Positions 9,626-47,251 of a stretch of DNA of 64,000 nt are shown piece by piece. The stretch is taken from contig OZ241827.1 in assembly GCA_965202585.1 (NCBI GenBank), positions 14,818,001 to 14,882,000 on the forward strand, read 5' to 3'. The notes under the pieces were generated by a model. That model did no database searches. It saw only the letters and a list, made by a program, of their open reading frames with translations, and had not been told where the DNA came from. The translations under genes were made by a program, and so were the position numbers. Within the stretch, counting starts at the first letter, position 1. Every line of letters starts with the position of its first letter. This DNA is from Thalia democratica (lineage: Eukaryota).

Positions 9626-9949
9626 CATATTTTAGATTTATAATAGTAAAAAATCTAAAAACAAACAGATAGAATAATCGTGTAATTTTGGTTTTAACTT
9701 TTATTTAGACTTTTATTTAGATACGTGATGTTTTCATACGAGAAAATAAATATAAAGTATTTTCAAAACATATAATAGGTAATGTAGTTTATATGTGTCA
9801 ATAAAAATTAGATAATAAACATTTCTGTGTCTTATATTTCGTCGAAATTCTTTTTTTAATCGTTCTATTTATATAGTAAAATAATTTTATCATAGTTTAA
9901 AATTAATTCAACATTCTTTTTTTTTTAACTTATCAAGTAGATGCTAAAC

Positions 9950-10463
9950 CAGTGGTCGGCACGGTGTACACTGGTGCACACTAGTATACACGAAATGTTT
10001 TTTAGGATGAACGAAATTTTTAGGGTACACGAAACTCATTTAGGGGTACACGAAATTTTGATATCACAAAAAAATACATAGAGTTAGATCAAGTATGCAG
10101 TTAATATTTAATAAAGTAATTAAAAAATACTGATCTTGGGATTTTGTAGTAATTGCAGAGAAGTGTCCAATTAATAAATATGTAAGATAAAGCCATATAA
10201 CTAAAATATCATCGTGAAAATAAAGTAAAACATATAAAGAGGTCAATTAAAAATAGGACCAATTAAAAAGTTTCAGCTTCAGTTGTTAAATGGTTTGCGT
10301 GTAAATACAAACTGAGTTATGAATTTTAAGGAGAAATGCACTAACAAAAGTGTTTACGTAGTTCGACCACTAGCGGCGTTTATTAAACTTAGATCTAGGG
10401 TTGCACCAATTTTATTTTTTGCAGCTTGGTGTACATAGAACTTGATTAGCTTGCCGACCACTG
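9950..10463. mobile_element. hAT (Charlie-like ends) MITE, 514 bp, unit 1
   Basis: 12-bp TIR CAGTGGTCGGCA; 8-bp TSD TGCTAAAC at 9942-9949 and 10464-10471; no coding capacity. Confidence 0.92.
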
Positions 10464-10810
10464 TGCTAAACCATTTCTTCAAAATGTGTATGCTTGAATT
10501 GATTGAATAATCTTTCTATAGTCAGTTTAAATTTTAATTTTCTTTTTATATATTCATTTATAATTTAGTAAAATTAAATATAAATATGCTATCTACATTA
10601 CATGTAGCTTCCGATATATGTTTACATAAAAATACCCACTTTGTTTAGTTGTACAGTTGTTTCAGTGCGATGTATCACCTAAGCTTGCCAATTTGAAGTA
10701 TTTTTACATATAGCTTAGGTAAATACAAAGCTAATAACAAATAATAGCTTAAAAGTATTGAGAAATACAGCTAAAAAGTTGCAACAGAGTTTGTTCATAA
10801 AATTATTCTA

Positions 10811-13800
10811 GAAGTTATCCAAGGAGTTGTATAAGAAGTTGTCTGAGTACTCATCCAAGTAGATATTCAACTATGCCAATGTTGATATCGAACTAGTTAT
10901 CCAAGTACTTTGTATCCAGGTAATTACCCAGGTGTTGTAATTAAAGTATTTTTAAAATACTTATCTAAGAAGTTTTTATCCAACCAGTTGTAATCAAATT
11001 TGTTGTTACTGAAATGGATATCCAAGCATCTATCCAATAAATTGTTATCCAAGTTATAATCAAAGTTGCTGTTATCCCATTTTTAACACAAGTAGTTCTT
11101 TAGTAGAAGTTTTCAAAACTGTTTTCAAAGCTGCTATCCAAGTAGTAGTCATCCACATAGTCAAACCAGTATTATCCTAGTAATATAGAAGTGTTTATCC
11201 AAGCAGTTGTTAGCCAAGTAGTAGTTATTGAAGCATTTATCCAAGTAGTTATAAAGGTAGATATCTAAGTTACTATCATTCAAGCAACTGTTATCAAATT
11301 AGTTGTTATCAAATTTATTTTTTCAAAAAGTTATCGAAGTGATTATCGAGTTAGTTAACTAAGTTGTTATATAAGTTATTACCAGAGTAGTTGAAATCCA
11401 TGTTGCTATCCAAGCAGTTATCCAAGTAGTTGCCCAAGTAATTAACAAAAAAATGGTTTAACAAAATAGTTGTCCATTTAGTCATTAAACTAGAAAATAA
11501 AGCATTAGATTTCGAATTTGTTATACAAGTCGTTGCTATCCAGGTTGTTTTCTAAGTTGTTATCAAGTTAGCTACCCTAGCATTTGTCTAAGCATTTATC
11601 AAGTAGAAGTAATCGATTTTTTTTATCAATGTATTGTTAGCTAAGTAGTTATCAAAGTAACTATCTATGAATTTATCTAATCAGTTATTTAAGTAATTAT
11701 CCAAATAGTTATTATCTAGGTGGCTATCCAAGTAGTAGTTATTCAGGCAGTTTTTACCCAATGAATTAGTATAAAAATAATTCTTGTCTAAGTAATTACT
11801 ATTTAAGTAGTTTTTATCGAAGTACTTGTTATCTAAGTAATAAAGAAAGTAGTTATCCCAATGATTATCACAGTATTTATCTAAGTAGTAATCAAAACAG
11901 TTGTTGTTTGAGAAGAAGAATTAGCTATCATAGTAGTTATTATCCGAGCAGTTATCCAAATAGTTATCCAATCAGTTTTCATCCACTTGGTTGTTATTCG
12001 AGTAGTTGTTATCTAAGAAGTTATCCAAGTAGTTATCAAAGAAGTTATTGTTTAAGTTTTTCTTAATCAAGGATTAGCTATCCAAGTAGTTATCCAAGCA
12101 GTTGTTATCCAAGTTCGTGACCAAGTAATCGACCATATAGTTATCAAAGAAGTTACATAAGAATTTTTCAAATAAGTTGTCCAGGTAGCTATCCAAGTTT
12201 TTGTCCTAGAAGTTTTCAAAGTATTTAACAAGGTAGTTGTTATTCAAGTTAAATTTCAAATAGCTATCGTAGAAGTTATCCAAACAGTTGTTATCGAAGT
12301 TGGTATCAAGTGGTTATCCAAGTAATTATCCAAGTACTTATCCAAGAAGTTGTGATCCAGGTATTTATTAACCGAAAAGTGTTTATTTAAGTTGTTATCA
12401 AAGTAGTTGCTACCCAATTAGTTATCCAAGCTGTCATTTAAGTAATTATCCATGTAGTTTTCCATGTAATCGTCCAAGTTGTAAAACAAGTAGCTTTTAT
12501 ACAACTTGTAATCATATGTTTTGTGATTCAAGTAAAACTATTTTAAGTAGTTGTTATCCAAGGAGTTACTATCGAACTAGTTATCCAAGTAGTTGCTTTT
12601 CAAGCAGTTATCCAAGTAGTTGTTATTCAAGTAATTATCTAATTAGTTATCATAGTAATCAATTTAGTAGTTATCCAAGTAGTTAAACAAGCAGTTTCCA
12701 TCCACGTAGTTGGAATCAAAGTAGTTTTTATTTAGGTAGTTGATACCTATGTAGTTTTTATCCAAGTATTTATTATCCGAGAAAGTATTCAATCAGTCAT
12801 CCAAGTAATTATCTAAGTTGATACCATGGTATAGTCATGCAAATTGTTATCCAAGTTGTTACCCTATTAGTTTTCCAAGCAGTTATTCATGCAGTAGTTA
12901 TCTAAGCTGTTATTAAAGTAATTATCTAAGTAGTTGTTATCCGAATAGCTGTCAAAGTTAACATTGAAGTATATATACAAGTAATTGTCATCCAAATAAC
13001 TACCAAAATAGTTGTTAATCAAGTTATTGTTAACTACTTAGTTGTTATACTAGTTTTTAAATAAATGACTATCAAAGTAGTTATTGATGTTGTTGTCCAA
13101 ATAGCAGTTCTCCAAGTATCTTTTATCCAAGCTGTTGTTATCAAAGTAGTTGTACAAGAAGAAAACTTATAATTTGTTCAAATAGTTGGTCAAGCTGTTT
13201 TTGTATTCAAGTAGTAGTGTATCCAAATTTTTAGCAAAATAATTATCCAAGTAATTGTTATTTAAACAGGTATCCAAGTAGTAGTTATTCATTAACTAAA
13301 TTATTAAAATTTTTATCCAAGTAGTTCCATGTACCTTTCCAAATTATTATCCAGAGAGTCAAATAACTAGCTGTCTACGAAGTTCTTCAAATAGTCATCC
13401 TAGTAAGTAACCGAGTACTAGTTGTCCAAGTAGTCATTTAAACGATTGTCCAAGTAATAGTTATCCAGAAATTTGTTATCCCAGTAGTTCTTATCCCAGC
13501 ACTTATTCAAGCAATTAAGTAGTTTTCGAAATAATCAGCCAAGTAGTATTCCAAGTATATATCTGATTAGTTTTCCGAGTAGTTGTCATCCAAGCAAGTA
13601 GCCAAGTAGTTATCCAAATAATTGTCTAAGCATTTATCCAAGTAGTCGGTATACAGTTTGTTCATATCCAAGTAATCATCGAAGTAGTCATCCCAATTGT
13701 CATTCAAGTAATTATCTAAGTAGTATCCAAGCAGTTGTTATCTATAAATTTCATCCAAATTGGTAAATATCCAAGTAGTCTTTGTCCAAATAGTAGTTAT

Positions 13801-13850
13801 CTAAGCAGTTATTTAAATAGTTCTTACAAAAAAGTTGTTATCTATGAAAA
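10811..13850. repeat. Degenerate (GT)TATCCAAGTA(GT) satellite, ~3 kb, unit 1
   Basis: Very many imperfect 12/15-nt units (tatccaagtagt, tatccaagtagttgt). The minus strand reads as N-Y-L-D(-N) repeats with frequent stops. Confidence 0.9.
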
Positions 13851-15229
13851 TGTAGACTTAATAAAAGTAAAAATACAGATTTTATGTAAAACAAAATATA
13901 AAATAATAGCAGTTTTTTAAACAAACTTATCAAAACTTCTACAATGCTACTGTTCAATATATTTAACGCAATATTATATTTTTAGATATTGTTCAAAAAA
14001 AAACATGTCATCTTATTAAGTTTTAAATACTATATTTGTCAAAAATTTTGTTAAGTGTAGTTTCGTAGATTTTGGTGTTTAACAGTACATTTAACTGAAA
14101 AATAGTAGTGCATGTTAAGGATCCAGTATAAAATTAGAAGTATATAGAAAACGCTACTATATATTGTAGTATTAAGAAATCAAAATAGATTCATATATTT
14201 TTATGTAGTAACTTTTAAGCCTTCGATTTATCATTCTTAATGTTATAATAAAACAAAAATATAATATAAAACTAAAATATTTTACGCAGATTTATTGGAA
14301 CAATTATACTGTATTAAAATGGTTTCGTTTATGACCTATTTGCTTAAACAATTTAAGTTATTGCAATTTAGAATTTTACTTCATGTGTATGTTAAGGTTT
14401 ATAAGCATAGTTTTCTTTTTTATCCATCTTTAAAAAAAGTAAAAAATTAAAACAGACTTTTAAATAAACTGAAATAACTTTAACTAAAAATGTGTAAAAG
14501 CATATACTATAAAAATTGATTTTTCACAAAACAAATTCATAAATTTTTTTACAATATTTGTTTTTCTTTTATTCATAGCAACTTATTTTAACTCAAAGAC
14601 AAACTTTACACCTTATTACCTCAAACAATTATTTAGTAGTGGAGTATTTTCGTTTATTTAATGTTTTATTGTGAAATATTTACAGAACTTTTCTAAAATA
14701 AGTGTTGTTTTACATAAAAAAGAATATAAGATATGAAAGGCGTTGGCTAAGGGTTAGGTCTTGCAAATTTCAATAAAAACATTTTAAAATTGTCGTTATA
14801 TGTATTAGCAAAAAACAAAAGTAGTTTTATTTTTATTACATAATTAAACTTACTTATCGTTTTAGTTTAAAAATTTAAATTTTAGTGAAGTATACCACTA
14901 GACTAAAGTTGGTTTAATTTATATATATATATATATAACTATTATGGCACTTCAAACATAAAGAAACAAAATTAAATAATTCTGTAAGATTCAAATAAAA
15001 TAACCCAGTATTTAAGTAATTATGTTTTATTGATATATATATTAACAATTTTACACCAAATATATGCACATAAAAATTTTCCAAGTAATGTAACAAGTAA
15101 CGTAACAATCAATATTAAAATAACTATAATAAAAGAGAAACAAATTTAGGTTAAACAACCAAGAAAAACTTAGGCTACTAACCAGCTTGTAACTAATAAA
15201 TATTCAATCAAAACAAAAACATTTCAAAA

Positions 15230-16336
15230 CTATTTTTTCAGCAGCTTTTCACTGTATTCTTTAAAATTGTTTACAAATTTAAATTTTTTTTCTCTTTTCA
15301 CTCGCTTAATTGGCCATTAAGCATTTTGGAGTCTTATTAATCTAGCAAGCTCATTTAATTTAATCAGTTGTAATAAGAATATAATCAGTGTTGCTAGTGT
15401 TGTTGAGTTCTAACTCACTTTATAGAGGTTTTAATCGTGATCATTGCTTTGCATGAAACACCGTGTTGAATAAAAATCTCAATCTGAAATTGTCTTATTG
15501 ATGTTTATTTTTCTTACAATCGTCCAGTATTTCCTCAATTATGCCAAATGATCTTGGGTGTGCTTGGAATACTATTTTTACAACAATCAGTTCGTCTTTA
15601 CACTTGGTTATTTTGGCACGTAAGCTTGAAGCAACGAATAGCTGATTTTCTATACCTGAATCTAAAGTGTTTTCAGTATGCAAATTAGTGTTAAAATCAA
15701 GCTTCTCAGCATTTCTGTCGTTTTTTGATTCACTAACTTCAGAGCAACTTTGAGCATTTATACCAGAAGAACTTTGTTTTCTTTGTTATTTTTGCTTATA
15801 CTTACTGCGGTTTCGGCTGCGGTAAAACTAGTCTTTTTTTTTTCTTTTTTTCTCGAAACTTCATTCAAGTTGCTCTCCTCTACATTTTTATTAAAATGTT
15901 TATCTTTCTCAGTTTCACTCTGTGCCTTAGCATTTTTAGTTCTACAACAAATATCAATTTTATCCGATTCCTTGTCACCCTCTTTTTTGGGCACAACTGC
16001 TGTTGATAGGTGGCAATCGCCGCCAGAGTTGTCAACTGGATCATGGCAAATACAAGTGACGTCATCTGAAGACTATTTAACTACTTGACTGTGTTTAACT
16101 ACACTTGGTTTCTTACTAACAAGTCTGTGTGTACACTTTGGTTCTGGTTTCGGATTTGTTGGGAAATTCCGATAAGACATTTTACTGTTCTTATCATCGC
16201 GATCAGTATTACCAACAGACATTTTACTTTTCTTTTTTGAAAAGTAACGAACAACAACGAACAGTGTCGTCAAACCAATAAGTACGACCATAAATTCACA
16301 AAAACTGATGTAAAGTTCAAATGAAGTCCTTATCAT
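15230..16336 (-). pseudogene. Paralogue A1 of the signal-anchor/helical family
   Basis: Starts MIRTSFELYISFCEFMVVLIGLTTLFVVVRYFSKKKSK (ATG at 16336). In-frame TAG at 16073-16075, 4-bp deletion versus A3 near 15775, and further disruptions. The end (KFVNNFKEYSEKLLKK*) is homologous to D. Confidence 0.8.
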
Positions 16337-18251
16337 TTTATTTGCTCGAACAAACTGCAAAATAACAAGTCCAAAGTTTAATTTAGAGTTTGTCACAAAA
16401 AAAAAAGGTAAATAGTTTAATTTAATGTGATACAGAACAACTTCTTATATTTAAATCTAAAACTAATAATTAATAAAAGTTAATTGTTGGTTGACTGCTT
16501 CTCATTATTGATAAAGACTTAAAAGTTTTAAATATTTATATAATTCTTATTTTTATTTAACTTACTTTAATTGAATAAATTCTACAATATAACTTTTTTT
16601 AAATGTTTTTTCACAAAAGTGCTTATCAAACAAAAACAATATAAATTTTAGTTTATTTTTAACAAAATTAAACTTTTATCTACCTTATAAAACAATGATT
16701 TTATAAAGATAATCATAAAAAAGAAGTTTTTAAAATTTAACTGGTCCAAACAAATTTACGATTCTCATATATAATAAGTGGGTTGCCTTTAATATTTTCA
16801 AAATAATTTTATTTTTTAGAAAATCTTAAAAAGTAATATAACTTTTAAAATGATTATATTTAGTAAAACAATATTGTCAACTTTATTATGAAGTATTATT
16901 CAAACTTGTCAACTTTGTCTTCTATTTAGTTTTTCAACATTTTTTCATAGTTATCTCATAAATTAAATTTAGTTTCCACTATACCCTTATTTTTAACTAA
17001 ATAGTTGAAATGACTTTACACCATAATCAATAATCATAATGATGATTACATTGTTGAAAGTTATAGGAAAAAATAAAACATTCAAAGCAACAGTTTGTTT
17101 TAAATGGTAGTTTTGGATATCTTTAATTTTTTTATAAAAGAAAAATGTAAAAAAAATATAGGAATTTAACATTGCAAGGTTCTTAAGCAAATCAGTTTAT
17201 TTTTGTCTTTTTTTGTTTTAAATTAATGCTAATAAAACTTATTAAAAGTTTATATGCAATTTTTGTTATTTATATGCTTAGAAAAGAGCTGTAAAAATAA
17301 AAGGGTTTGATTAAAACATATTTGTTAATGTGTTAACTTTATTTAAAACTTTAATGAACTATAATATACATATAGCGATTAAGTTTATACATAAAAATAA
17401 CGTTTTGAAGCAAGGTAAATTACTATAAAGTTTTTATAAAAACGTCATTAGCTGTAACCATATACGTAGATTAAAAAATTAATCAAAAATTTTTGTTTGA
17501 TTAAAAAAAGGTTGTCTTGTTTTAAATGGAATTATAATTATATAAAATTAAATTGACGGAAGTTCAAAAATTAGACACATTTCTTAATAGCCCTAATTTA
17601 ATTGCTAAATTATTTGTTTTTTTATCTGTTGCTGTCTTACCGATAATTTTATTTTTAAATTTACAAAAGGTGACATAATATTGAATAAAGCTTAATAGAT
17701 ATATTCATTTGAAAGTTTTCATAAAGCTTATGGTAACTTTTAATACTGATTTAATTTCAAAATAATGTTTGAGTTTTCTTACTATTTGAAATTTTTAGTT
17801 GAAAGTTTTTAAAAATTTTTCAATTTTGTGGTAAATTATGTTCAAATGTTGAAAGCAAATGTTTATTACATATTAATAATACGAAAAAATAACAAAAAAC
17901 TGATCATTTTTCATACCAACTTTTCGATATGTAGAGCTAAAACTTTAAGTTTGTCTGGTTAATTTTAGTTTTTTAAGAATATAAAACAGTTGAAAATTAC
18001 CATCAAAGTATAATTACTGCTTTGATTTTTTCTTATATTATTTAACATTGTACATTTTTCAAAAATAATTAAAAGTCATTTTAACGATTTAGTTAAAGAA
18101 ACTGCTACAAATTAAGAAGTTAAAATCTTTTTATTAAACAAAACATTTGTATTGTTAACTGCTTTAAAATTTAAAAGAAAATATATGATGTAACGGGTTT
18201 TTAGTAGAAAAATACTTTATATCCTTAATCATTTTATTTTGTATTTTTGTT

Positions 18252-18829
18252 TGCCTGTCATGTTCTGATGTTTTGTTGCATCAGTATTTAGTTTGAAACA
18301 TTTCGTCATATGATTCTCATTGGCTCGTACATTCAGCCGTATTAATTCTAAATATTCTCTGAGCTCAACTTAAAACAATAAATAATGCAAGTATTATTTA
18401 TTCAAAATTTTCAATTTTACAACATATGTAAAAAGTTGCATTTCTGAAATGTTTATTTCATAGTTTAAATGTGAACAAATGTAAATAAGTCACGTGTACA
18501 AAATGAGCCAATCACGGTAGGTGTTTAATTTGAACTGACGAAAATGACTCTTATTAATTTACACAGGGTTTGTTTTTAAAAAAATACTTTTCAGTATGCT
18601 CTTTTATACTAACTAGATCCGGGTCCGGCCGGACCCGGATCCGGACTTTTTTTTTTCAAATTAGAATATGGCCGGAACCGGATCCGGACTTTTTTTACAA
18701 ATTAGAATCCGGCCGGAACCGAATCCGGACTTTATTTTTAAATTAGAATCCGGCCGGATCCGGATATCAGACAAAAATGGCAATATCCGGCCGGACCCGG
18801 ACCCGGATAGTGAGTCTGGTACATCACTA
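18252..18829. mobile_element. 5'-truncated copy of the right ~590 bp of the 671-2424 hAT element
   Basis: Matches ~1835-2424, including CCGG subterminal repeats and the right TIR (ctggtacatcacta). No left TIR or TSD found. Confidence 0.85.
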
Positions 18830-18891
18830 GTTCCAAACGTAACAAAATTTTTAACTCGTACAAGAATAAATATAATCGGGTTTGATTATAT

Positions 18892-19222
18892 AGTGGGAAA
18901 TGATCAAGTAGAAATTATGTAGATGGGAATTAATTCGGGTGGGAAATGATCGGGTGGGAATTGATTTTGGTGGGAAATGATCGGGTGGGATTTGATCGGA
19001 TGGGATTTGATTTGGGTGGGATTTGATTCGGGTAGGATTTGATCGGATGTGATTTGATTAGGGTGGGAAATGATCAGGTAGGAAATGATCGGGTGGGATT
19101 TGATTCGGTTGGGATTTGATTCGGGTTGGATTTGATTCGGGTGGGATTTGATTCGGGTTGGATTTGATCGGGTGGGATTTGATTCAGGTGGGAATTGTGC
19201 GGGTGGGAAATGAACGGTTCCC
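18892..19222 (+). repeat. G-rich 15-16-bp minisatellite (GGGTGGGATTTGATTC / GGGTGGGAAATGATC)
   Basis: Roughly 18 tandem imperfect units with strong strand asymmetry, ending in gggaaatgaacggttccc. Present only in unit 1. Confidence 0.88.
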
Positions 19223-20904
19223 ATTAAAAACAATAGGTAAACTTTTCAATTAATAAAAACATCGGCGAAAGTCTGGACTTTCGTATGCTGTGAGACAAGC
19301 TCAAGTTTAACAAAAGGGTTGATAATACTAATTCGATCATCAGACCACAAGCCTTCGGTAGACTTAGATCGGTTTCGTTCTTATTATGACTCACCTGTTA
19401 GTCACAACTGTAAAACTTGCACCCTTCAATTTTCAAACGGCTTTTACATGAAAGAACCATTTGCTGGTATTGATCAGTGACGTCAGCACTGTTAATTACC
19501 GTGCAACGTTTAAGACATTGTTCACTAGGCAAGACATCTGGTACGCTTGTATTAAACACGATCAACAAAAACATCAGCGACAGCCTTCAGAGCAAAAGAC
19601 GTATTGTTGGAATTTGAATTGTTATGTATGAATTTTTTATTATCTAATTTCAAAATTAATATAATGAACTATCAATGAAAGAAAATATAATGCTTACTTG
19701 TACTATCACAAGCTATGATAGGTAGTATAATTTTATTGATTGCATATTTAAATGTTGGTGTTTACTATATTTAACTGTTTTGTTTTTAAACCCTTTTAAC
19801 TAATTTTTGTGTTTTAATTTTTGTTTCTAAGCATACCTTTATTTCGAATGTTTTCTAAGAATCTGTAAAAGCCTAAAACTGAAACGTTTTATTTTCAAAT
19901 CTGGATTTTTAAATTGCTTAATCATATAGTATTTTAAGTAATTTATTTAAAATAAAGACCAAAAATGTTAAAATCATTTCCTTACACGTATTTTGTACAA
20001 CAATAGAGTAGTTTTATTAAATCATCTATGTTTTTTTAATTTAGTGATAAGATTTTGATTTGTAATTTTATAGTCTATATGGTTACTGCATAATAGTATG
20101 ATTTAATTCTAGATATATCGCATGCAAAATATATAAATAATATTTATTCTTAAGGACTTTTTAGATTTGTGATTATATGAATTTAAGTTTTTTGTAGTTT
20201 TTATGTACTGTAACTGCGATTTATTTTCAATCAAGTTAACTTATAAGTTAAAAAATACAAACAGTTTAAGGTGTAGAAAGCGTTATTTAACTTCATAATA
20301 GCTTATATTTGCAGTAATTACACAAGTATATTACCTTTTTTACTAAGAAATCATTTGTTTTCATTAATCATAGAATAGTAAATAGGGCTCGCAAACTAAG
20401 TCATAGTTTCGTCAAAAATATTTGATAAAAACTTATTGATACGCTTATAACAATGTATATACATACGAAAAAACCATTTGGTTTTATTCGAAACATGCTT
20501 TTTCAACTAAAAGTATTTGCTGAATTCAAAAAAAAATTATAAAATATTAGTTGGTTTTTTTGAAACATAAATAGTAATTTTAGAAATTAAAAAAAAAAAT
20601 TGATTTGAAATAATTCAAATGTTTTTATAATCCTAATTCCTGCAGTACCTTAATATATTGTATCTTTTATTATTTTTTATTAATCGATTATTATTAGAAT
20701 TAAGTTAAGGTTATTATGAATAAAGCAATATTTTTTAAGTACTTTATTGATCATATATCATCCGCAATAAAAAAAGAGAAACAATACATCAACAACTTAT
20801 AAACAAAAAGGTCCAAATTTACAAAGGTCTTTACTAGAACATCAACTGCAGTAGAAGATGGAGGTAACTCCATCCGAAACATAATGTAGGTGTTCGTTTA
20901 TTTT

Positions 20905-22787
20905 CTACTGTGAACTGAGCTTTAAGGAGTTTACCATATCTTTACTCAAAGTGTTAACTTGTCCAACTAAGTCTTTCAATTCTTTAAGCTTGACTTCCTT
21001 CATCAAATTTAAAGATAAGACTTCAACTTTTTGGTTCATCTCAGAAACTTTATCATTCCATATATTTTTTGAACTCAGGTCTCTACTAATTTTAAGTTGA
21101 TTTAAATTATGTGGTTGATACTCTTTAGCAGCGACAACCAGACCAGTAATATTTTTCAAAAATTTGTGGTATTTGACTAAGTCTGATTCAATTTCAATAA
21201 CCTTTTTTTTTCTAAGGTTTTTGTTTAAGTTTAGACTCTCAACAACTAACTTTAAAGCCTCTTTTCTGATTTTAACAGTTAAAATAGAGAAGTTTCTTAA
21301 TTTCTTTCCAAAATTACTTTTAACAACTACTTTATTATTTGAACGTTTGTTTTCATGCTTAAACGCTTTGTTAAGAAGTTTATTTATACGATACTTTTCA
21401 TCTTAACTAGATTCTTTTTTAAGTTATGGAATAGCGTAAGAATTTCACCAAAATAATTTTCTTCTTTTTCAAGTTTATTTATCCCTAAATCTAGCCTATC
21501 AGTAAGTTCACAAAAACTATTGAAATTATCTTCAGAATTTGATTTATCTAGTCTGTTATGACAACCTCTATCATTGGCTGAAGAATTTATAGGATTATTT
21601 TTCTTAAATTTTTCATTTCTTGTTATACCCGACTTTTCTAGTGCAGTACCTTTGTTTCGACAAAAGGAAACATCTTCTGGACTCATCTGTGTTACAAAAC
21701 TTGTACTATTGTCCTTACAACCGAATTCTACAGAATTTAAAATGCAACCATGTTTAGGATTGTTCTCACGTTTAACTTTGCTTTTAGTTTCTTTAACTTT
21801 TAAACGTTGTGCATTTTTAATTTCAGAGTAATTATCAACACAATTTTTCGTGCTATTAATTAAAAAACCATTCTTAGACTTACTCTTGTTTTGAAGACTT
21901 TCAACTTCTAAATGTTGTTCATCATCAATTTCAGAGGATTTATTCACGGAATTTTTGTCACTATTATTTACAGGATCTTTCCCTGAGTTTACTTTGCTTT
22001 GAAGACTTTTAACTTCTAAATGTTGTTCATCACCATCTTCACAGGATTTATTCACAGAACTTTTGGTGCTATAATTTACAGGATAATTTTCAGATTTAAC
22101 TTTGCTATGAAGACTTTGAACCTCTAAATATTTTTTATCATCTATTTCAGAAGATTTATTCACAGAATTTTTGATGCTTACATTTACAGGATCTTTCTCA
22201 GATTTAACTACGTTTTGAAGACTTTCAACCTCTAAATTTTGTTCATCACCATTTTCAGAGGATTTATTCACAGAATTTTTGATGCTTTCATTTACAGGAT
22301 CATTCACAGATTTAACTTCGTTTTGAAGACTTTCAACCTCTAAATTTTGTTCATTATAAATGTCAGAGAAACTTTTATCAGAGTCTTCAGGCATGACTTT
22401 ACTGTTATTCTGATCAGACTTAATTACTGTCGGTTGATGAGAACCACTGAGATTCGCAGAAAATAAAATTTCGACGGAGCCGTTCACTGACTTAACATTT
22501 TTAGAGCAAGAAACTACAGGATTACCTTTCACAGCCGTACCTGTTTCCACCTCATTTTGCTTTCTGTTGACAAAACTGTTGTTATTTACAGACAATTTTT
22601 TGGATTGAGATGAACCTTTTTGGTCAGACGTAGAGTTTTTATTATCTATTGAACTGTAGTTTTCAGTTAGTTTACCGCCATCTTTATACTTCTTTGCATA
22701 TAAATAAACAAGTGTTGCCGACAAACTAATAACTCCAACCATCAGTTCACAAAAACTGACAAAAAGTTCAAATGCAACTGTTATCAT
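20905..22787 (-). pseudogene. Paralogue B1 (signal-anchor, five 36-aa repeats, helical C-terminus); frameshifted
   Basis: ORF 21384-22787 ends KMKSIV* where B2 and B3 read KMKTRERINN (4-bp loss near 21390). The downstream frame continues to LKLSSQ* at 20905. AATAAA on the minus strand at ~20743-20748 is conserved in all three B copies. Confidence 0.82.
21813..22352 (-). repeat. 108-bp (36-aa) in-frame coding tandem repeat in B1, 5 units
   Basis: Unit EQ(N/H)LEV(E/K)SLQ(N/S)(E/K)V(K/N)S..DPVN.S.KNSVNKSSE(N/I)(G/D)D, read directly from the translation. Confidence 0.9.
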
Positions 22788-34522: not shown

Positions 34523-36301
34523 CTACTGTGAACTGAGCTTTAAGGAGTTCACCAAATCCTTACTCAAAACGTTAACTTGTCCAACTAAGTCTTTCAATTC
34601 TTTAAGCTTGACTTCCTTCATCAAATTTAAAGATAAGACTTCAACTTTTTGGTTCATCTCAGAAACTTTATCATTCCATATATTTTTTGAACTCAGGTCT
34701 CCACTAATTTCAAGTTGATCCAAATTATGTGGTTGATACTCAATAGAACCGACAAGCAGACCAGTAATATCTTTCAAAAATCTGTGGCATTTGACTGAGT
34801 CTGATTCAATTTCAATAGCCCTTTTTTTTCTAAGGTTTTTATTTAAGTTTAGACTCTCAACAACTAACTTTAAAACCTCTTTTCTGATTTTAGTAGTTAA
34901 AGTACAGAAGTTTCTTAATTTCTCTTCAAATTTACTTCTAACATATAATTCATTATTTGTATGATGGTTTTTATGCTTAGACGCTTTGTTAAGAAGATTA
35001 TTTATACGCTCACGAGTTTTCATCTTAACTAGATTATTTTTTAAGTTATGGAATAGCGTAAGAATTTCACCAAAATAATTTTCTTCTTTTTCAAATTTAT
35101 TTATCCCTAAATCTAGCCCATCAGTAAGTTCACAAAAACTATTGAAATTATCTTCAGAATTTGATTTATCTAGTCTGTTATGACAACCTCTATCATTGGC
35201 TGAAGAATTTTTAGGATTATTTTTCTCAAATTTTTCATTTCTTGTTTTACCCGACTTTTCTAGTGCAGTACCTTTGTTTCGACAAAAGGAAACATCTTCT
35301 GGACTCATCTGTGTTACAACACTTGTACTATAGTCATTAACAGTGAACTTTCCAGAATTTAAAATGCAACCATGTTCAGGATTGTTCTCACGTTTAACTT
35401 TGCTTTTAGTTTCTTTAACTTTTAAACGTTGTGCATCTTTAATTTTAAAGGAATTATCAACACAATTTTTCGTGCTATTATTTACAAGACCATTCTTAGA
35501 CTTACTCTTGATTTGAAGACTTTCAACTTCTAAATGTTGTTCATCATCAATTTCAGAGGATTAATTCACAGAATTTTTGGTGCTAAAATTTACAGGATAA
35601 TTCTCAGATTTAACTTTGCTATGAAGACTTTGAACCTCTAAATATTTTTTATCATCTATTTCAGAAGATTTATTCACAGAATTTTTGTTGCTTTCATTCA
35701 CAGGATCTTTCTCAGAATTTACCTTGCTTTGAAGACTTTTAACTTCTAATGATTGTTCATCACCATTTTCAGAGGATTTATTCACAGAATTTTTGATGCT
35801 TTCATTTACAGGATCATTCACAGATTTAACTTCGTTTTGAAGACTTTCAACCTCTAAATTTTGTTCATTATAAATGTCAGAGAAACTTTTATCAGAGTCT
35901 TCAGGCATGACTTTACTATCAATCTGATCAAACTTAATTACTGTCGGTTGACGAGAACCACTGAGATTCGCAGAAAATAAATTTTTATCAGAGCTGTTCA
36001 CTGACTTAGCATTTTCAGAGCAAGAAACTACAGGATTATCTTTCACAGCCGTACCAGTTTCCACCCCATTTTGATTTCTGTTGACAAAACTGTTGGCATT
36101 TACAGACAATTTTTTGTATGGAGATGAACCTTTTTGGTCGGAAATAAAATTTTTACTACTTTTCGAACCGTAATTTTCAGTTAGTTTACCGCCATCTCTA
36201 TACTTCTTTGCATAAAAATAAAGAACTGCTGCCGACAAACCAATAACTCCAACCATCAGTTCACAAAAACTGACAACAAGTTTAAACAAAACTTTTATCA
36301 T
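34523..36301 (-). pseudogene. Paralogue B2: full-length frame (592 codons) broken by one in-frame TAA
   Basis: ORFs 35561-36301 and 34523-35308 are in the same frame. The intervening 84 codons are open and homologous to B1 and B3. TAA at 35561-35563 replaces AAA (Lys of NSVNK). Four 36-aa repeats (~35435-35866). Confidence 0.82.
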
Positions 36302-38749
36302 TTTATTTGCTAGGGAAATGATCTGTAAAATATCAATTATCTTAAAACATCAAAATCTTGGTCTTAGCGGTTTAAAAGTAGATAAATTAATTTATAAATT
36401 CTAAAAGTTGACTTTCAGAACATGTTGCTTATAGAGCTGGTTAGTTGTACAAGCTATATACTGTAACAAATAATGTTATTAAACTATAGGTTAAATAACT
36501 GGTTTACTGTATCCTTTAATCTAGTTTAATAAAAGTTGCTTTTTACAGTTCTATATGAAATGTTTCTGAATGAGATTTTAAAAGACAAAAGTTCTTAACT
36601 AGTCTGAGTAGTTAGTATATACAGTATAAAATTTCAGTTATTAAGTAATATGGTAGTGTAGATAGTTTTTAATCAGAGAGTTATTTATATATTAGTTTTT
36701 TAAATTAAATAAATTGAACTATAATAGTTTAAGTTTATTAGTTTATTTTTGTTTTTGTTTAAAATATATCATCTCGGAAAGTATTAAAATGTTTAGAAAA
36801 TTATAATTAAATATAAATAAAGAAAACTTTTAGATTTAAATTTGTATACTTCCTTTCAACTTTATTTTTATTAGTTATATAAAAACATCAAGAATAACAA
36901 ATTTAAAATTTAATAAGTAACTGGTTAAACATTTTATGACTCTAAATAATTGTTTGAAGTACTACATAACATACTAGCATTATCTGCATACTTCTAATAA
37001 TATTCTTGATATTTAACATGTAACATGTTTTTTCAATTATATTTACTGTAAAACACCAAAATGTATAAAAGTACATTTATCAAACATTTGTCAAATAATA
37101 TTTTCAACATTCAATAAAACGACGAGCTGTAAAAGTTATATAATGTCTAAAGATGATGTTTTACGTTAAATTTATGGCAACTAAGTGTTTTTTGAACTTT
37201 ATTTATATTATGTTATTACACTTTTACGGTAGTGTTGTCATATTCTGTTAAATACCTTGAGTTTTATTCGACAACTAATTTTTTTAGATTTATAATCAAT
37301 AAAAAATCAATATTTCTAACTTTACTAAATTTAAATTTGCTACTGTTTTGGTTTTTAAACTTTGAATTTTTAATTTCCATCAGTAATTAATTGTATAATA
37401 ACGACAATTAAATCTTTACGAAATTATGAAACTAGTTTTAACTAAAAGTTCTTATTGCTTATGACTTATTGATTAACAATTTTGTTGTAGTTTAAAAATA
37501 AAATATAAAAACTTTTACATTTTTTTATTTAAACAAGAATTAAAATAGTTAAAACCATCAATGAATAATTATCTCAGTCAGTCTTTTACAAATAATTTTA
37601 AAAGATATTTTGTTTATTTAAAAAAAAAAACATTGACAATTTTTATTCAAATAGAATACTACTTTTTTTTATTTCTTGATAATACGTATAAAGACTGTTT
37701 TAAAATATTTTTATTAAACGTTTCAAGACCTAAACCGGTAGTCAACGCCTCTTATATCATATATCGTTCCCTATGTTACCATATTTGGGTGAAATATCAA
37801 AGTTATTTGAGAAGAAAGTACAAGATCTCACACAATCCACTTACATTCATACAAAACATAAGATAGTATTTGTTTCAAACCTACTTTTAATATTTAAGCT
37901 CAAGGACCTGATACCTAACCAAGATAAAGTTGTGTCGTATATAGTTTAAATTGCTTCTTCGAATAAAGTCATATTGGTCAGACGTCCACGAATTTTAAAA
38001 CAAGAGTTAAATAACATTTACTATAATATTTATTAAATTTCATGAAATAAAAAAAAAACTAAAATAACGAAAAGATCATCGATAGCGGAAGTTTAATTGA
38101 TGACACAGATTGTGCAAATAACTATATGCCAATGAGATTTATTTATGTTAACCATTCTAATAATTTTACTGACCTAGTGAGATTAAAGGCTATATCAATA
38201 TTTTTAAACAAACGAAAAGGTGTTGATTTTAAAGTTTCTTTATTTGCTTAGTAATTGGCCATTTTGTTTTTTTGTACTATAGTTAGTTTAATAACTGTTT
38301 TTGTGTTGATTAATTTTCTACTATTGTTAATCTCATTATTGACTAATGAGCATTAAGATGTTCTTTTGTTGTTTTTAGTGAAAAACTATGTTTTAAGCTC
38401 TCCAGTTCTGCAGTAACGTTTCTGATAATATGCAGTGAAAATGTATTAAAACTTTTAACAAAAGCATCTGAGTATTTTTATATATTTCGATATATTTACA
38501 ATAGACTCATGTTTGCGTTATTAAATATTAAATATTTATTTTATACGATTACAGCAAAAAACTGTTTTAGTTAAATTAAATATATATTTGCCTTGCTTTA
38601 AGACTTTAGATTTTCATACTTAATCTATAAAGATGTATTATAAAATAATTTAGTCAAAAAAAAAACGATTTTTATTTAAACAAAGTAAATTTAAAAGAAA
38701 TAAGTTTGTAAAACCGTATCACTTTTACAGCTCTTCCTTAGCAGATAAA

Positions 38750-40263
38750 ATGATATATAGTTCATTTAAACTTGAAATCAGTTTTTGTAGACTGATGGTT
38801 GGAGTTATTGGTTTGTCGACATCAATTGGTGCTGTTCGTTATTTTTCAAAATTAAAAAACAAACAATCTGATGTAAATGTCAAAGCTACACCAAATACTA
38901 ATACCAGCAAAGATAATTCAGCAGAAAGTACAAGTTTATCTACTTTTAAGCTACCAACTGTTAGAAGTATAGAAACTTGCAGTAACAAACCGCTAATGTG
39001 TACCAACCGTAGTTTAAGCAATAGTAGAAACGCTGTCATTTGTCTTGACCCGAGTAAAAATGACACTGGTTCAAGCAAGGAAGAAATCCTTCACAATATA
39101 ATGTCTTCTAAAATTGTGAATAGTTGCGCTATATTTTCCAATGTAAACAAACCTGAGATAAATTTAAATGAAAACCAAGTTCAAAATTTTGTGAAAAACA
39201 GATCAAATATGGGCAGTGATTCTAAACTAAATGAAAGCAATTGTGACTTAAATAAAGTTTTCAATGTAGAGGAAAAGAGAGCACAAAACATTTTGGATAA
39301 AAAACTTTTAGATGACTCAAGTTACCAAGAGAAACTACGAGTAGAAAGTATTTGTAGTTTAGGCGATGAACAAGATTTAAAAACTTTTTCTAAACCAGCA
39401 ATTAGTAGTCAAAAGAGCACAAATTCAAAAAACGAATGTTTGAAAACTCTTTCGGTTGAAAAAATCGCAAACGATTCTAATGTTTCAATTTCAGACTCGT
39501 CTAAAAACGAACAGGAAGACAACAAATGTCAAGATTTAGCTACAAATACTTTTAAAAGTCAAGAAACTGACTCTTTTATTATAGGGAAGATGAAATTTAT
39601 GACAATTTGAACCATAAAGATTCTTGTTTAGAGTTCTTTAATACAAAACTAAAAACACTTCAAACCGATAAAATATTTTTTAACAAAGAATGCAACGAAA
39701 TAAGTAACATTTACAGTGCGTTTCTTAAGCATAAAAGTTTAAAAGGTACCAAAAAATCGAGCTTTCTTAAAAGCATTAGTGCGAAATATGAGCATTCGGT
39801 TCGTGAAATAAAATGTTCTAACAGTATGGCTAACTTCGGCAATAAACGAAAAGAAAGTATTTACGATTGGTTTTTGTATATGAAAAGAGATTTGTTAAAT
39901 AGCATGAAAACTTCCCTAGAAAACCCAACTTCTGACAAAGTTTTAAAAATTGTTTACAACAAAGTCCTATCAGGTTTCAACAAAATGTGTAAATTCATTC
40001 AAATGTACTCCAATCAGTGTGAAGAATCAATTGAAATAATTCGAAAGATTCTTGTTGATAAAAGTAATTTAGAACTAAATGTTAAACAATGGAATGAAAA
40101 ACTTTGTGCTATGATTATAAATATTGAAGCTTTAACTTTAGAAACAATTGAAGTAATCAAAAAGTTAAAGTGTGATGAAATAAACACTAATGGACTTGTT
40201 AGCTATGTTAAAAATATTTATAGAGAAGGTATTATGATATTAAAATTGTTTAAATGTGAGTAG
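38750..40263 (+). pseudogene. Paralogue C2, frameshifted by an internal deletion
   Basis: Collinear with C1. The ~60 bp encoding AFNKNSKDNKLNTTFHAETT are missing at ~39570, shifting the frame. The downstream frame (YREDEIYDNLNHKDSC...LFKCE*) is intact. Confidence 0.82.
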
Positions 40264-40647
40264 TACTAGTTATATGAAGTTCACGATATGTTTATAAGCG
40301 TTTGTTTTTTATTTGTCATTAAGTGTTTTAGTGAGCTTTTTAGTTATCAATTTATAATTTTGTTGTTTTATCAATTTACTTATTTAGTAATTGTTACATT
40401 TGTTTTTTGTTACGAACAATAAAAAATGTTTACCAAAATTTTGTATTACATTGATAAATTAATTTAATAAAAATGATATTACGAAATTAATGTGCTTTTA
40501 TTTAACAAACAACATATTAGACTTGAAAGAAAACAATTCTAATATATTAATAGCTGTTTAGCTTAATAATTAATTAACTCATTTCCTAAATAACTTCACA
40601 ATTTTTTTGATCCCATTTTTTTGTACTTTTATAGTTAAAAATAAACA

Positions 40648-40761
40648 TTTTAAATTTGATTCCCTCTACCTTATACCTCTGGGTTTAAAATCTTCCAAGA
40701 ATATTTCAAATTAATTCCCTCCACCTTAAACATACGGGTTTACAAAACTCCCCAGTGTTTT
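40648..40761. repeat. ~54-bp minisatellite, ~2 units, downstream of C2
   Basis: Same unit and flanks as 26966-27462. Confidence 0.75.
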
Positions 40762-43700
40762 ATATAACTATTTAGACATGTATAAGAATGCCCATCGCTC
40801 ACTTTGCTCTAAATGAATGTCAAGGTTTAAAAGTCTTTTTTAATGACTAAAATATCAAGCCACTTTTTTATATTTATTTACTTCCGACAAACCAAATTAA
40901 AATAAAGCGTTCATATCTAAAAAAATATTTTTTATTTTATGTTAAATCGGTTGTTGAACTAATTAGTAAGACTATGATCGTAAAAAAAATAAAATATATA
41001 TGTTAAAAGGAAATTAGAAAAAAAATTTTGTAGTTTTTAGTTAGACTGCCAAATGTATTTTTTTTAAACTATCAAGTTACTTTTTTATGTGGTAATAAAT
41101 ATTAACCTTTAAATTTTCTTTCAGGATTTTTAACTCATTCAGATAGTAACTCGTCGTAATGTGAATTGTCAGACTTCGAACAATCGTGCACCCATTTTTG
41201 ATATTTCATAACTAAGTAACTTTATCGAAAAATTCAGATTCGGAGGAATAAAATTTTAACATACACTGTGGCATAATATTACAGCGGTTCTTTATTTTTC
41301 TTTGATTCATTTTGTAACAGATTTTCATCTTGAGTTTACTTACGCTATATAACAAAGCTATAAATAATCTCACAACTAACTCAAATTAGACATTTATTAA
41401 AAACAATAAATATAAATTGTAGAGCATTTCACAATATACAAATAGAATTTTTTAATAACTGTGGAATCGTTTTCTTTTTTATCAAAATATTACTTAGAAA
41501 AAAATGTTCAGATAGACTAACAGTTAAAAAAACAGTGCAAAAACTATAGAAATTGTGTTTAATTTATAAATTTTATTAAAAGTTCATTTTAAAACTTTTA
41601 GACAACTTGAATAAGTATCTAGCCTTTTTCAAGCGCTAAAACTACTTTTAAACGTTTTAAAATTAGTAATCTCGCACAGAGGCATTTTTAATAAAAAATA
41701 TAAAAGTCGTTTTTTCTTCTTAAAAAACTAACATATAGGTGTAACATTTTTTACAACATAAAGAATTTTTTTCTCAGCTACACTTGTTTTGAATTAAACA
41801 ACAATTTTATCCTTAGATTATGTATAAGTATTCCTTAAATTACTTTTAATTAGATTTGTATAAATTAGGATTATGAAAAATTGGCACACTCTTAGATAAG
41901 AGTTTGAAACCTATGTTAAATAGTACTTAAAACGATATTTCTAAAGATTATATTTAGGATGTGATTACTAACAAAAAAGTTATTTCTGTTAAATTTTTGT
42001 AGTATATGTTGGTTATAAATTCAAAGTAACAGATCTTTCAGCTTGTAATATTCCGGTAGCTAAAATTTATTTCTGATATTTTGTTTGAAAGGAGGTTGTT
42101 TTGCAAATCTATTTATAGTTATAAGTAAAAGTTTCTAAAACAAAATATTAAGGATTTGAGATAAAATTTGTCTACTACTTTTGATTGACGACTAGAAAAT
42201 CAGTCATTTGATTAAAGAAAAATAGAAACAAACTTTTAAATAGTTTTTACCGCCTTTGCTTTATCTTCAAATTGTATCAAATAAGTAAAGCGGATTGAAA
42301 AGGATACCCACAAGTATTAGATGTTGTACTTTGAAAAATATGAAAGTTTACGAAAATAATTTCTTTAACCTAGCCTCTATGTTATTTTTAAAACTTTTTT
42401 TTTTCATTTTAAACCTTATTGCTTTGTTGAACGTTTTTTTGGTGTACCTTATAGCCCCAAAAATATAATCATTGAAAACCTATTTTGTTGAAGTAGTTTT
42501 ATTTATTATTTCTTTATTTCTTATACAAAACTTTTTAAAATTGAAACTATTGAAATGTTGTTTAAAACTTATTTTTGGAAATAAGTTTTAAAGTTTATTC
42601 GCTACCAACGGCTTTAAATATGGGTTTGTTTGATTCATTGACATAATAAGTTGTATTTATGAATATCTTACAATTTAAGAGTAAGTGTTTAGTAAAGTAA
42701 AATTGCGGATCGTGTAAAACTTGCTCGATTAACAAATTTGTTAAAACTACACTGGATATTTTGGACTTTGTACAGAAAAGAAAGAGAAGGTCTCGTTGTA
42801 ACTAAAACTAAAACTGCGGCCGGGGAAAACTTTAATTTACAAAATTTAGCCCGCGTACACCGAATGCCTGCCGGCTTCTGCCTTACATAAACTAAATTAA
42901 AACAGTGAATACAATAGGATTCTAATTTAATTATAAACTAGTATTTACTACGAATAAAAAGTGAAAACAAAAACATTATAAATTTGTAGATACACATGTA
43001 CATAAACATGCAATTAAACTCAACTATTTTAGCTTTGCAAGTTTTGAAAACACGCTTTTGGGTGTAGCTGGTTTACTATTAAAGCTAAATGATATTTAAT
43101 AAGTTAAAACAATTTAAACATTGTTTTTAATTCTTTTAAATCAAAAGTTTTGAAAACCAGATGTTACTCTTCTACATTTTGTTAAAAAAACAATAAGTAT
43201 TAGATAAACATGATATGGAGATAAACTATTAATAATTTAAGCGATCAAAGCTGCGATGTTTGCAAATTCTTAAGGCGTTGAAATTGTTACTAAGTTTTTT
43301 CGCAAATTATTTTTCCTGAATAGTTTAACAAGATTGATAATGAATTCCGCAAATGTTATAGTATATTACTTTATAAATATGCATCAAGTAATTAAATGTG
43401 TATATTTAACTCACAATAAAGTAAGAGATTTACTAAACGATAATTTTGTTTTACTAAAAGCTACTGTATTCTTAAACCATGTTATATAATATCAAATACA
43501 TTTTTTTTAAGTATTCAAAAATATTTCTATTTTCAGAATTATTTTATATAAATGTAGTGACAAAAAATTATTAATAAGTTGTTATAACATGCAGCAAATT
43601 AAAAACCTTTTTTTATAAACAAAAGATTTCTACAGAAACAGTACAACTTATAAGAAAATAGTATTATTTTTAACTCTTGTTGTCGTTTTTATTCATAAAC

Positions 43701-44573: not shown

Positions 44574-44782
44574 TACAAGTTAACAATTTTACACAAAATA
44601 AATGAACATGAAAATTAGCCAAGTAATGTAACAAGTAACGTAACAATCAAAATAAAATTAACTATAACAAAACAGAAACAAGTTTGAGTTAAACAACCAA
44701 GTAAAACTTAGGCTAGTAACCAACTTGAAACTAACAAACGTTCAATCAAAACAAAAACATTTCAAAACAATTTGTTCAGCAA

Positions 44783-45160
44783 CTAATTACTGAATTCTTT
44801 AAACTTGTTTACAAATTTCAAAACTTCTTCACTTTTGACTTCATCACTTGCGGCTTTGCACAAAACTTCAATTTTTTGTAAACCTCACTAACTTAGCTAT
44901 TCCAATTTGAAACATCCTTTTTCAGCGTTTCACCACTTATTTCCGACATCTCATTTTTCATAAACTCTTCAGTTTTTGCTATCTGTTCGCCATACTCCTT
45001 AGCAAAACTTTTAACTAAACTGCATTCCAACTCAATTTCTTTCAAATATCTGATACTTTCTCTAGCATCTGAGATATCCAATTTACCTCCAACTTGCTTT
45101 AGCAACAGTAGCTTTATGTGAGTAAACAAATAGAGTAATATATTTATGAATATCTTTCTA
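44783..45160 (-). pseudogene. Paralogue D, unit 3 (no hAT insertion)
   Basis: ORF 44893-45129 plus continuation. Same TAA as the unit-1 copy, with an additional 1-bp frameshift just downstream. Confidence 0.7.
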
Positions 45161-46806
45161 TAACTTTAGTTCAGTTTATTTGCTAAATTGCTTAATAAAT
45201 AGTTAATAGATATTGTGCATAATATTTAAAACAATTTTATTTGCTAATGTTTTAGTTCTGACCAAGTTATCAACTACAAGGTGAATATTTAGCATTGTCA
45301 CGGTTGAATAATTTTTGACTTATGAGCCAAAAATTTACTCAGGCACTTACAATCAGTGTAGTTCTAGTGTTAAAAAAGTTTTGCATTTTGGAATGATGTA
45401 CTCTAACCATGTATAACTGTTTTGAAACCAACATTATATGATCTTTCTAAAAGTTAAACAACTACATTAAATATGATGTTACTTGTAGTTAATTGAATAA
45501 TTAACTAGTTGTTTTATTTTCAATTGCCAGAAAAAAAAAGTTTTAATTTAAGTTTAATTTTTTTAATATTAGAACTAAAAATTCCAGCTTGTTTTTTATT
45601 GCATCAGTTGTTAAAATTTATTTTCTTCTTATTTACTTGAAAGAAAATATCAGGATAGGGCTAACTCAAGTTAGTTTAGAACATTTTAGACTAAAGCTTG
45701 TTTTAATGAGTTAGATTTTTTTCTCTCTAGATTTGAAATCGTATATAACTAATTTGATGTTGTTTAAACATTTAAGCTCTATTAACTATTTTATATTTTT
45801 ATTTTTTAAACTTAACTAGGTATTAAATGTTATTAAAAAGCAAATTAATAGGTTTGCAAATACTAAGATTATAAGGAAAAAATTTAAATTCTTAGATACT
45901 TAGGCATTTCGACTAGTTTTAGGTTTTTTAAATAACCTTGATATTTCATTTTTTAAAGTTTTTACTAAATTTAGGCTATTTCATATATTTAACTCGTTTG
46001 TAAATTTTAGTTTTGACTAAAATTTGTTTTTTTTTTATATCAGGCTAGCTATTGATCTTTGTTGAAATAACTTAGTTGTCTTTACAGATATTTTTAAATA
46101 GGTTAAAGTAACTAAAAAAATATTTTTTTTTAATTGTTGTTTAGCTTAATGGCTTTAAAACCTTTACAAATTTCGAATTTGGAAAAAAGTTTTTGAAATA
46201 TCTATTTTTGTTCAGGCTTCTTATAGTAGCTCATGCTAGTTATTATGTTTTAAACTTGGGCTTTAAATCTATTGTTTAAATTTATTTTTTAAACTTGAGC
46301 TAAATTGTTTTATTTAAATTACTAGCCAACTATTTTTACCTAAATTATTTTTTCTTTATACATTTAGTTCTTACGTTTATGGTTATTAAAGTTTAAATAG
46401 TTAGATTAGTTTTTTTTATTTCTAGTGTCATTTTTAAGGTTGTCACAGTTTTAGGCTATTAAATTAAACTCAAGTTTATCTAAAGTATTTAAAAAACTCA
46501 GATCAGTTCAGGCAAGCTTAAACTTTAAAAAAAAACAAGCTAAACTTTAATTAAACTTAAATTAAAACCTGATTTGGATACTATCACTGAATTCATGGTT
46601 GCTAGAAAATCTCCTAGGAAAACCTAGAAATTAAAAATTTACAAAAAAAAACCTTGAAAACTTACATTTTAAGAAACTTTGACAAAATCTAGTAAAACCT
46701 AGGAGTTAAAAAAAAACTAAACTCCTTAAAAAACTCTGGGATTTTAAACAACCTTAAATTGAAAATTCTGAAATTAGGATTAGGTATGAAAAACTTATTA
46801 CAAACA

Positions 46807-47251
46807 GTAGTATTTACTTTTTACTTGGAGTTTTGAATATTATAAATAACAATTTAAAGTAGCTTCACAGTATTTTTCTAAAATTTTTTGATATTTAGAC
46901 AAGTTTTTTACTTATATTGGAATTAAACAAAATGAATTGTACTCTTAAAAGATATCTTAAAAGATATCTTAATAGTTATCTCGTATATTGATTTATTTTT
47001 TTTATAAATGTTTTTTTATATTTAAACATTTATTAGAAAAAATAAATTAATAAACGAGATAACTACTTTCCAAGTTTTATAAATATCTTCGAGGCTTAAA
47101 GATTACAATTCATTTTGTTTAATTCTAATATTAAATCAAATATAAGTAAAAAACTTTTTTTAATAGCACAAAGTTTTAGAAAAATACTGTGAAGCTACTT
47201 TTAATTGTTATTTATAATATTCAAAACTTCAAGTAAAAAGTAAAATACTAC
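46807..47251. repeat. Foldback palindrome, unit 3 copy
   Basis: Homologous to 4201-4648; arms are reverse complementary (gtagtatttactttttacttggagttttgaatatt / aatattcaaaacttcaagtaaaaagtaaaatactac). Confidence 0.88.

Follow-up and report, generated by a model that had tools for sequence, protein, structure and literature searches.

What are the long open reading frames (ORFs) that recur behind a near-constant N-terminus in one 64-kb stretch of the genome of the salp Thalia democratica (assembly GCA_965202585.1, contig OZ241827.1, positions 14,818,001 to 14,882,000; here called the window), and where might their products act? Salps and related animals rank among the major grazers of the ocean, and their molecular biology has hardly been explored. 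An earlier description made from the letters alone (the sequence-only reading) placed at 15230-40263 a four-member family, A to D, of membrane-anchored proteins with a low-complexity linker and a helical C-terminal domain, and every N-terminus, basic patch and C-terminal motif that it quoted was found in the sequence. The membership proved different. By six-frame reading and tblastn with intact paralogues, the window holds ~11 loci of three subtypes, A, B and C, and the genome holds 78 matches to the C-terminal domain, or head, and at least 150 to the N-terminal leader. The supposed fourth type, D, is what is left of an A-type head, cut short and interrupted by a stop, and its motifs (403-543 on the minus strand, with a duplicate at 44765-44875 on the same strand) both lie outside the range first assigned to the family.

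Family unity, extent and selection

The encoded proteins are built of three parts: a leader of ~40 amino acids (aa), a spacer of 250-600 aa that is rich in Ser, Asn, Lys, Asp and Glu, poor in proline and frequently interrupted by tandem repeats (~5 copies of a 108-nt unit in the B type), and a head of ~195 aa carrying the motif WNxKV...IExL. In C, the only one of the 11 window copies that is intact, these parts span residues 1-40, ~41-325 and 326-525, the last with six helices. The coding region is a single exon. An acceptor-like (T)TTTACAG stands 18-22 nt before the ATG in 20 of the 20 members examined, including three metagenome contigs, and is followed by a conserved stretch ending AGCAAGTAAA; farther upstream than the acceptor, conservation is at background. 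From this conserved acceptor we infer that the mRNA 5' end is most likely spliced or trans-spliced.

We worked with three alignments of the family: a head profile (A1), a 45-aa leader alignment (A2) and a 31-sequence head alignment (A3). Across subtypes the head is 13-19% identical to that of C, and profiles built from single subtypes detect the others at E values of 2e-7 between A and B, 3e-10 to 2e-17 between B and X, and 3e-8 between X and C (1e-4 to 2e-17 over all cross-subtype matches). None of 2,550 shuffled decoys matched the head profiles at E<10. Since matches arise across subtypes and not among decoys, the C-terminal domains do align significantly, and the kinship first proposed from a few shared motifs is borne out.

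Head matches cluster on C1 (29.65-31.03 and 39.09-39.19 Mb), C2 (14.81-15.01 and 57.05-57.10 Mb), C4, C5 and C7; the cluster at C1:29.65-31.03 Mb enters the head-match count only. Open frames of at least 450 aa hold ~22 of the 78 matches, and every subtype has intact paralogues (497-823 aa). The leader reaches farther than the head. Its alignment has a mean column identity of 57%, with S11, F12, C13, L15, I20, G21, L22 and Y31 invariant or nearly so, and a profile search of the genome scored at least 150 loci at E <=1e-5 from 329 candidates. Large additional leader-bearing clusters were seen at C5:72.2-73.7 Mb, C5:77.2-79.1 Mb and C9:43.7-44.2 Mb (L064-L066), with the same three-part build and a long repeat-rich spacer, and without the SFC motif. 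In three distant leader genes (C9 and C5 clusters) the C-terminal ~200 aa resembled neither one another nor the WN head, so the leader is common to several head families.

We estimated the ratio of nonsynonymous to synonymous divergence (dN/dS; Nei-Gojobori) between intact paralogues, in C-type, C1-cluster, B-type and A-type pairs. The head (last 200 codons) gave 0.2-0.6, with 0.9 in one very recent pair, the leader (first 40 codons) 0.3-0.8 and the spacer 0.7-1.4; in narrower form the ranges are 0.3-0.6 for the leader and 0.8-1.2, or about 1, for the spacer. This pattern indicates purifying selection on head and leader with a drifting spacer. The family had been called fast-evolving, and in support of this the linkers change at about the neutral rate, with head and leader constrained. 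Synonymous divergence over the first 40 codons was 0.08 for L011 against L016 and ~0 for L051 against L052, with 0.73 and 0.96 in the respective heads, and C-type copies show the opposite pattern between leader and head. The low 5' values in the C1-cluster and A-type pairs suggest patchy gene conversion or a nucleotide-level constraint in some lineages.

Such selection bears on whether these ORFs encode proteins at all. They might be decaying copies of a mobile or repeated element, or chance frames in AT-rich, low-complexity DNA, as their high copy number, the long antisense ORFs that low-complexity spacers also produce, and the broken state of 10 of the 11 window loci would suggest; the last point also counts against our own reading of a maintained family. 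We nevertheless consider a non-functional origin very improbable. Purifying selection acts on head and leader, with the spacer left to drift, intact frames of 500-820 aa exist in every subtype, and the head has a confidently predicted fold. Pfam scans found no transposase, reverse-transcriptase or other mobile-element domain. The copies, moreover, are parts of segmental duplications (at least 1.5-5.6 kb long, with a BACK-Kelch gene also on board) rather than discrete elements with ends, and relatives have been kept in other marine samples.

These outside relatives are the 30 proteins that a profile retrieved from 1.84 billion cluster representatives, 23 with E <=1e-10. All 10 that were looked up are ENA-only records. 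Each of the six contigs traced belongs to a metagenome assembly, and five carry a Tara Oceans label (PRJEB4352 or TARA); four match the genome paralogues at 73-90% nucleotide identity and two have no nucleotide match, and acceptor and leader are kept in all three metagenome gene starts examined. Other searches were negative. Pfam scans of 22 sequences (14 heads and eight full-length members) gave no credible match, and a sequence profile search of the PDB retrieved a TRIM45 stretch alone, at E 0.89. A feature search of the ESM Atlas found nothing for the head and, for the leader, one match at 0.76, below the noise level, while a fold search of the Atlas reached a TM-score of at most 0.54, with unrelated families. 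When C and an intact B paralogue were looked up in public assemblies, no exact match to either appeared. A word-based protein search with full-length C returned nothing, its candidates probably swamped by low-complexity words, and one with the leader only gave one candidate and no match; since the profile search does find relatives, both blanks are uninformative. One Pfam candidate, HTH_58 in the 823-aa A-type protein L051 (G000:C4:56078724-56081195), reached E 7e-10 with no single stretch passing, and was rejected as an artefact of repeats or composition, with a recurring motif in the spacer as its probable source.

To judge by these sequence comparisons, the family appears restricted to the Thalia democratica genome and close marine relatives. 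Lineage specificity and the lack of a named family had both been proposed, and the searches agree on each. We regard the family as real and undescribed: it goes under no described name and is of a familiar general kind. In our best explanation the copies belong to a real, selection-maintained and taxon-restricted multigene family shaped by tandem and segmental duplication and by frequent gene death.

The head fold

AlphaFold2 predicted six helices for the C-type head from a 14-sequence alignment, with a predicted local distance difference test score (pLDDT) of 79.8 and a predicted template-modelling score (pTM) of 0.69, and an all-helical structure for the head of B', a second B-type locus of the window, from a 31-sequence alignment (pLDDT 88.9, pTM 0.86). 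The head is thus confidently modelled as a six-helix bundle, in line with the helical bundle anticipated from the sequence.

Foldseek found no match to the PDB at E <=0.001, its best matches being PhoU-like (2iiu, E 0.019, TM-score 0.41). In an exhaustive VIA-align search with the better model, PhoU-like proteins again came first (3l39, Z 11.7 over 168 residues, root-mean-square deviation 3.7; 2iiu, Z 10.7 over 175 residues; 2i0m, Z 10.3), followed by the cytosolic helical domain of the ALMT channel (7voj and 7w6k, Z 9.2-9.9), and the C-type model retrieved the same PhoU-like proteins at Z 9.9. The PhoU-like matches (Z 9.9-11.7 over 156-175 residues) top the list and yet fall within the helical-bundle background, which VIA-align states at Z ~13.

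A PhoU domain is made of a three-helix unit repeated twice by homology, and its acidic metal-binding motifs are conserved. The PhoU family PF01895 gave no match in the Pfam scans of the same 14 heads and eight full-length members, and comparison of the first half of the head with the second (hhalign) gave a probability of 0.2% for an internal duplication. The 31-sequence head alignment contains no conserved acidic motif, its only nearly invariant positions being F116 and N151. PhoU-like bundles and the ALMT domain are the best whole-domain matches of both models, and the combination of sub-background Z, no PhoU profile, no repeat and no acidic motif argues for a shared arrangement of helices, not for homology.

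Other folds had been put forward for comparison, and none is supported. BAR and F-BAR domains gave Foldseek E values of 0.09-0.9 with TM-scores of 0.16-0.38 and deviations of 23-31 Å. Alpha-pore-forming proteins (ClyA, YaxB, AhlB, Hbl) matched only partially, at Z 7.1-9.0, and the head has no hydrophobic hairpin. The MLKL four-helix-bundle (4HB) or HeLo fold was absent among the matches listed in four fold searches, which is weak evidence.

Leader, membrane and topology

The leader begins with a short N-terminal tail of alternating hydrophobic and polar residues, continues with a weakly hydrophobic segment of 15-19 residues, many of them small, and ends in a cluster of Lys and Arg. Counted as uncharged residues, the segment is 11-21 long (Kyte-Doolittle 1.6-2.2 over 19 residues; L039 carries a 9-aa insertion within it). 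Each protein has one such segment, in its first 60 residues, and no other window above Kyte-Doolittle 1.6. The ten residues after it include 3-6 Lys or Arg in 15 of 16 head-family leaders and two in the remaining one; among the distant leaders, two of three have only two. The C-terminal flank is usually more positive than the N-terminal one. N-glycosylation sequons occur at or below shuffled expectation (in C, seven against 9.2 +/- 2.4), cysteines vary in number and are not conserved, and proline makes up 1-5%.

These properties are consistent with an uncleaved N-terminal signal-anchor. The basic cluster after the segment would, by the positive-inside rule, keep the C-terminal side cytosolic, and the head would then hang on a long flexible spacer from the surface of an organelle or endomembrane, where it might act as a protein-binding module. 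The points that count for an anchor are the single hydrophobic segment, the basic C-flank, the variable length of the segment, and the lack of sequon enrichment and of cysteine conservation. We favour an uncleaved anchor because conservation is residue-specific and segment length varies; a signal peptide that is thrown away does not usually call for as much constraint as eight near-invariant positions imply. Overall, we would give even chances to a membrane tether with a cytosol-facing head, mitochondria included among its possible sites.

Several observations weigh against a tether. In its shortness and low hydrophobicity (Wimley-White ~0.0-0.4) the core resembles that of a cleavable signal peptide, and signal peptidase might cut at the nearly invariant GLSA(T/A). 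Secreted families are also the best-known case of one leader kept constant on unrelated heads, among long tandem arrays in which many copies have died. The leader may be a cleavable signal peptide and the proteins secreted or lumenal (for example in tunic, mucus net or body fluid, or as immune or reproductive factors), with spacer and head extracellular, which we treat as the main rival, serious though less probable. The Lys-rich n-region (residues 1-14), the h-region LMVGVIGL and the small-residue c-region SATVGA fit the textbook layout; the weakly hydrophobic core, the spread of one leader over 150 or more loci, some with unrelated heads, and the tandem arrays with birth-and-death evolution all suit it. 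Less easily accommodated are the dense Lys/Arg cluster directly after the hydrophobic segment, the absence or shift of the putative cleavage motif in the A and B types, the varying segment length and the constraint on specific leader residues. Nor do the proteins have a conserved cysteine pattern, sequon enrichment or mucin-like Pro/Thr.

If the leader is an anchor, a special case is the mitochondrial outer membrane, with targeting like that of Tom20 and Tom70, as the sequence-only reading had suggested. The published rule for signal-anchored proteins of this membrane requires a transmembrane-segment Wimley-White value below 0.4 and at least three basic residues in the C-flank (PMC4010795). 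A rough calculation put the leader values at 0.00-0.44, with 14 of 16 head-family leaders below 0.4; 15 of 16 have the three or more Lys/Arg. Most of the head family would thus agree with both parts of the rule. The roughness of the estimate, whose procedure may differ from that of PMC4010795, is a further weakness of the tether reading. The rule, on this rough estimate, would allow the mitochondrial outer membrane; it separates signal-anchored proteins among themselves, however, and not from signal peptides. The Pfam scans found no tetratricopeptide repeat (TPR) or other Tom-like domain, and we know of no precedent for lineage-specific outer-membrane proteins numbering in the dozens to hundreds. 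We consider the specifically Tom-like assignment unlikely.

A bolder extension of the tether is that the leader is a dedicated organelle-surface address, for the mitochondrial outer membrane or another membrane facing the cytosol. The animal would then have expanded more than 150 genes into a fast-turning repertoire of heads tethered by long flexible stalks, which might, for example, recognise parasites or viruses inside the cell or sort organelles in its unusual embryos. We know of no counterpart to an organelle-displayed intracellular recognition repertoire on this scale, and regard the idea as a long shot.

Window loci, duplications and known systems

The window is part of an 802-Mb assembly, has 23-34% G+C and contains no N; tRNA genes and Rfam families were looked for across its 64 kb and none were found. 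Part of it repeats ~42.3 kb downstream, in a tandem segmental duplication that contains the Kelch gene together with A-type and B-type copies, its longest match being ~14.5 kb at 88-94% identity. Nested within this arrangement is a duplication of the B-C gene pair, ~13.7 kb apart. The loci, the matching segments and other features are collected in Table 1.

Table 1. Family loci and other features of the window (positions in nt; leader strings are those quoted in the sequence-only reading).
Feature	Position	Strand	Description
D	403-666	-	A-type head relic, truncated, in-frame stop; from tblastn with L052 and L051 (residues 571-658, 733-823) and six-frame reading
D, further piece	2372-2530		Beyond a ~1.7-kb repeat insertion
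D-like segment	14895-15302		At A; resembles D (blastn)
A	~15150-16336	-	A-type pseudogene; leader intact, 16202-16336 (start 16336; leader string 16286-16306); body with frameshifts and stops
B	20908-22787	-	B-type; leader start 22787, leader string 22737-22757; WN motif 21037-21060; spacer with 5.3 copies of a 108-nt (36-aa) tandem repeat, 21801-22368; frameshift near 21384-21396
Acceptor-like TTTTACAG	24956-24963	+	Start of the 24956-24982 stretch before C
19-nt conserved 5' leader ending AGCAAGTAAA	up to 24982	+	Directly precedes the start codon of C
C	24983-26560	+	Intact, 525 aa; leader start 24983, leader string 25013-25033; WN motif 26387-26410
A-type 5' fragment	32958-33191	-	Leader without start codon and first ~75 codons
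B'	34523-36301	-	B-type, 592 codons in one frame; single premature TAA, 35561-35563; spacer repeat 35377-35882
C'	38750-40263	+	C-type; frameshift from a 64-bp deletion relative to C, ~39578
D2	44756-45129	-	Second A-type head relic; duplicate of D within the ~42.3-kb repeat
A2 (locus)	57787-58627	-	A-type, duplicate of A; stops and frameshifts
C-like leader relic	60568-60588	+	Isolated; stop directly after
B''	62622-64000	-	B-type; frameshift near 62780; continues past window end
~42.3-kb duplication, first match	2425-16970 vs 45024-59240		~14.5 kb
~42.3-kb duplication, second match	20705-22283 vs 62418-64000		
B-C pair duplication	20706-22246 vs 34324-35868		
B-C pair duplication	24903-27079 vs 38670-40762		
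BACK-Kelch ORF	8315-9625	+	436 aa
BACK-Kelch ORF	50576-51886	+	436 aa
ORF antisense to A-type spacer	15750-16088	+	112 aa
ORF antisense to A-type spacer	58061-58531	+	156 aa
Satellite	1835-2431; 18624-19233		16/31-nt units (TGGGATTTGATTCGGG) and a 41-nt unit
Spurious ORF in satellite	18904-19233		
Tandem repeat	27044-27426		54/107-nt unit (7 or 2.9 copies, 72-73% matches)
Common flank	27396-28737		Shared by C and C' copies

The two ORFs antisense to A-type spacers are in all likelihood no genes; their resemblance to each other comes solely from the duplication of the opposite, sense strands. Each duplicated BACK-Kelch ORF encodes a protein with BACK and Kelch domains in a single frame that includes no BTB domain. 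The BACK-Kelch family is very large (5,816 first-look candidates in the genome), and a word-based search gave 147 matches at E <=1e-5, nearly all of them ENA-only records. The closest paralogues (95%, 95% and 84% identity) all adjoin copies of the leader-head family, one of them at 56.06 Mb on C4 beside the 823-aa A-type gene; this adjacency arises because the two kinds of gene co-duplicate in the same segments, and a specific partnership between their products need not be invoked to explain it. The satellite is relatively G+C-rich and yields spurious ORFs, and one copy of its block sits between the two pieces of the D relic. Gene C is closely followed by the 54/107-nt tandem repeat.

The family, which is under selection and counts at least 150 loci with the leader, is among the larger lineage-specific gene superfamilies in this genome, and its 40-aa leader and confidently modelled head make it a testable object. 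Should the leader turn out to be an organelle-surface address, the family would be an unusual case of organelle-tethered proteins expanded on a large scale; should it be a signal peptide, the products would be candidate components of extracellular material not yet described, or candidate factors in immunity or reproduction.

Two known systems offer the closest comparisons for the leader. Like proteins of the Tom20/Tom70/OM45 class, the family has one N-terminal segment, moderately hydrophobic on the rough estimate, then at least three basic residues and, beyond these, most of the protein (rule of PMC4010795). It differs from that class in having no TPR and no Pfam relation, and in being a huge, tandem, lineage-specific family where the import receptors are conserved and single-copy. 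In secreted superfamilies, for example the conotoxins, a conserved signal sequence precedes divergent mature parts. Those products are small, disulfide-rich peptides, whereas the proteins described here are 500-820 aa long, with a disordered spacer, a cysteine-poor helical head, a basic cluster after the leader and a cleavage that is only putative. The likeness to the conotoxin type lies in the organization of the family: the leader is the best-conserved module and the C-terminal parts behind it are unrelated or unrecognisable, in tandem arrays with rapid turnover.

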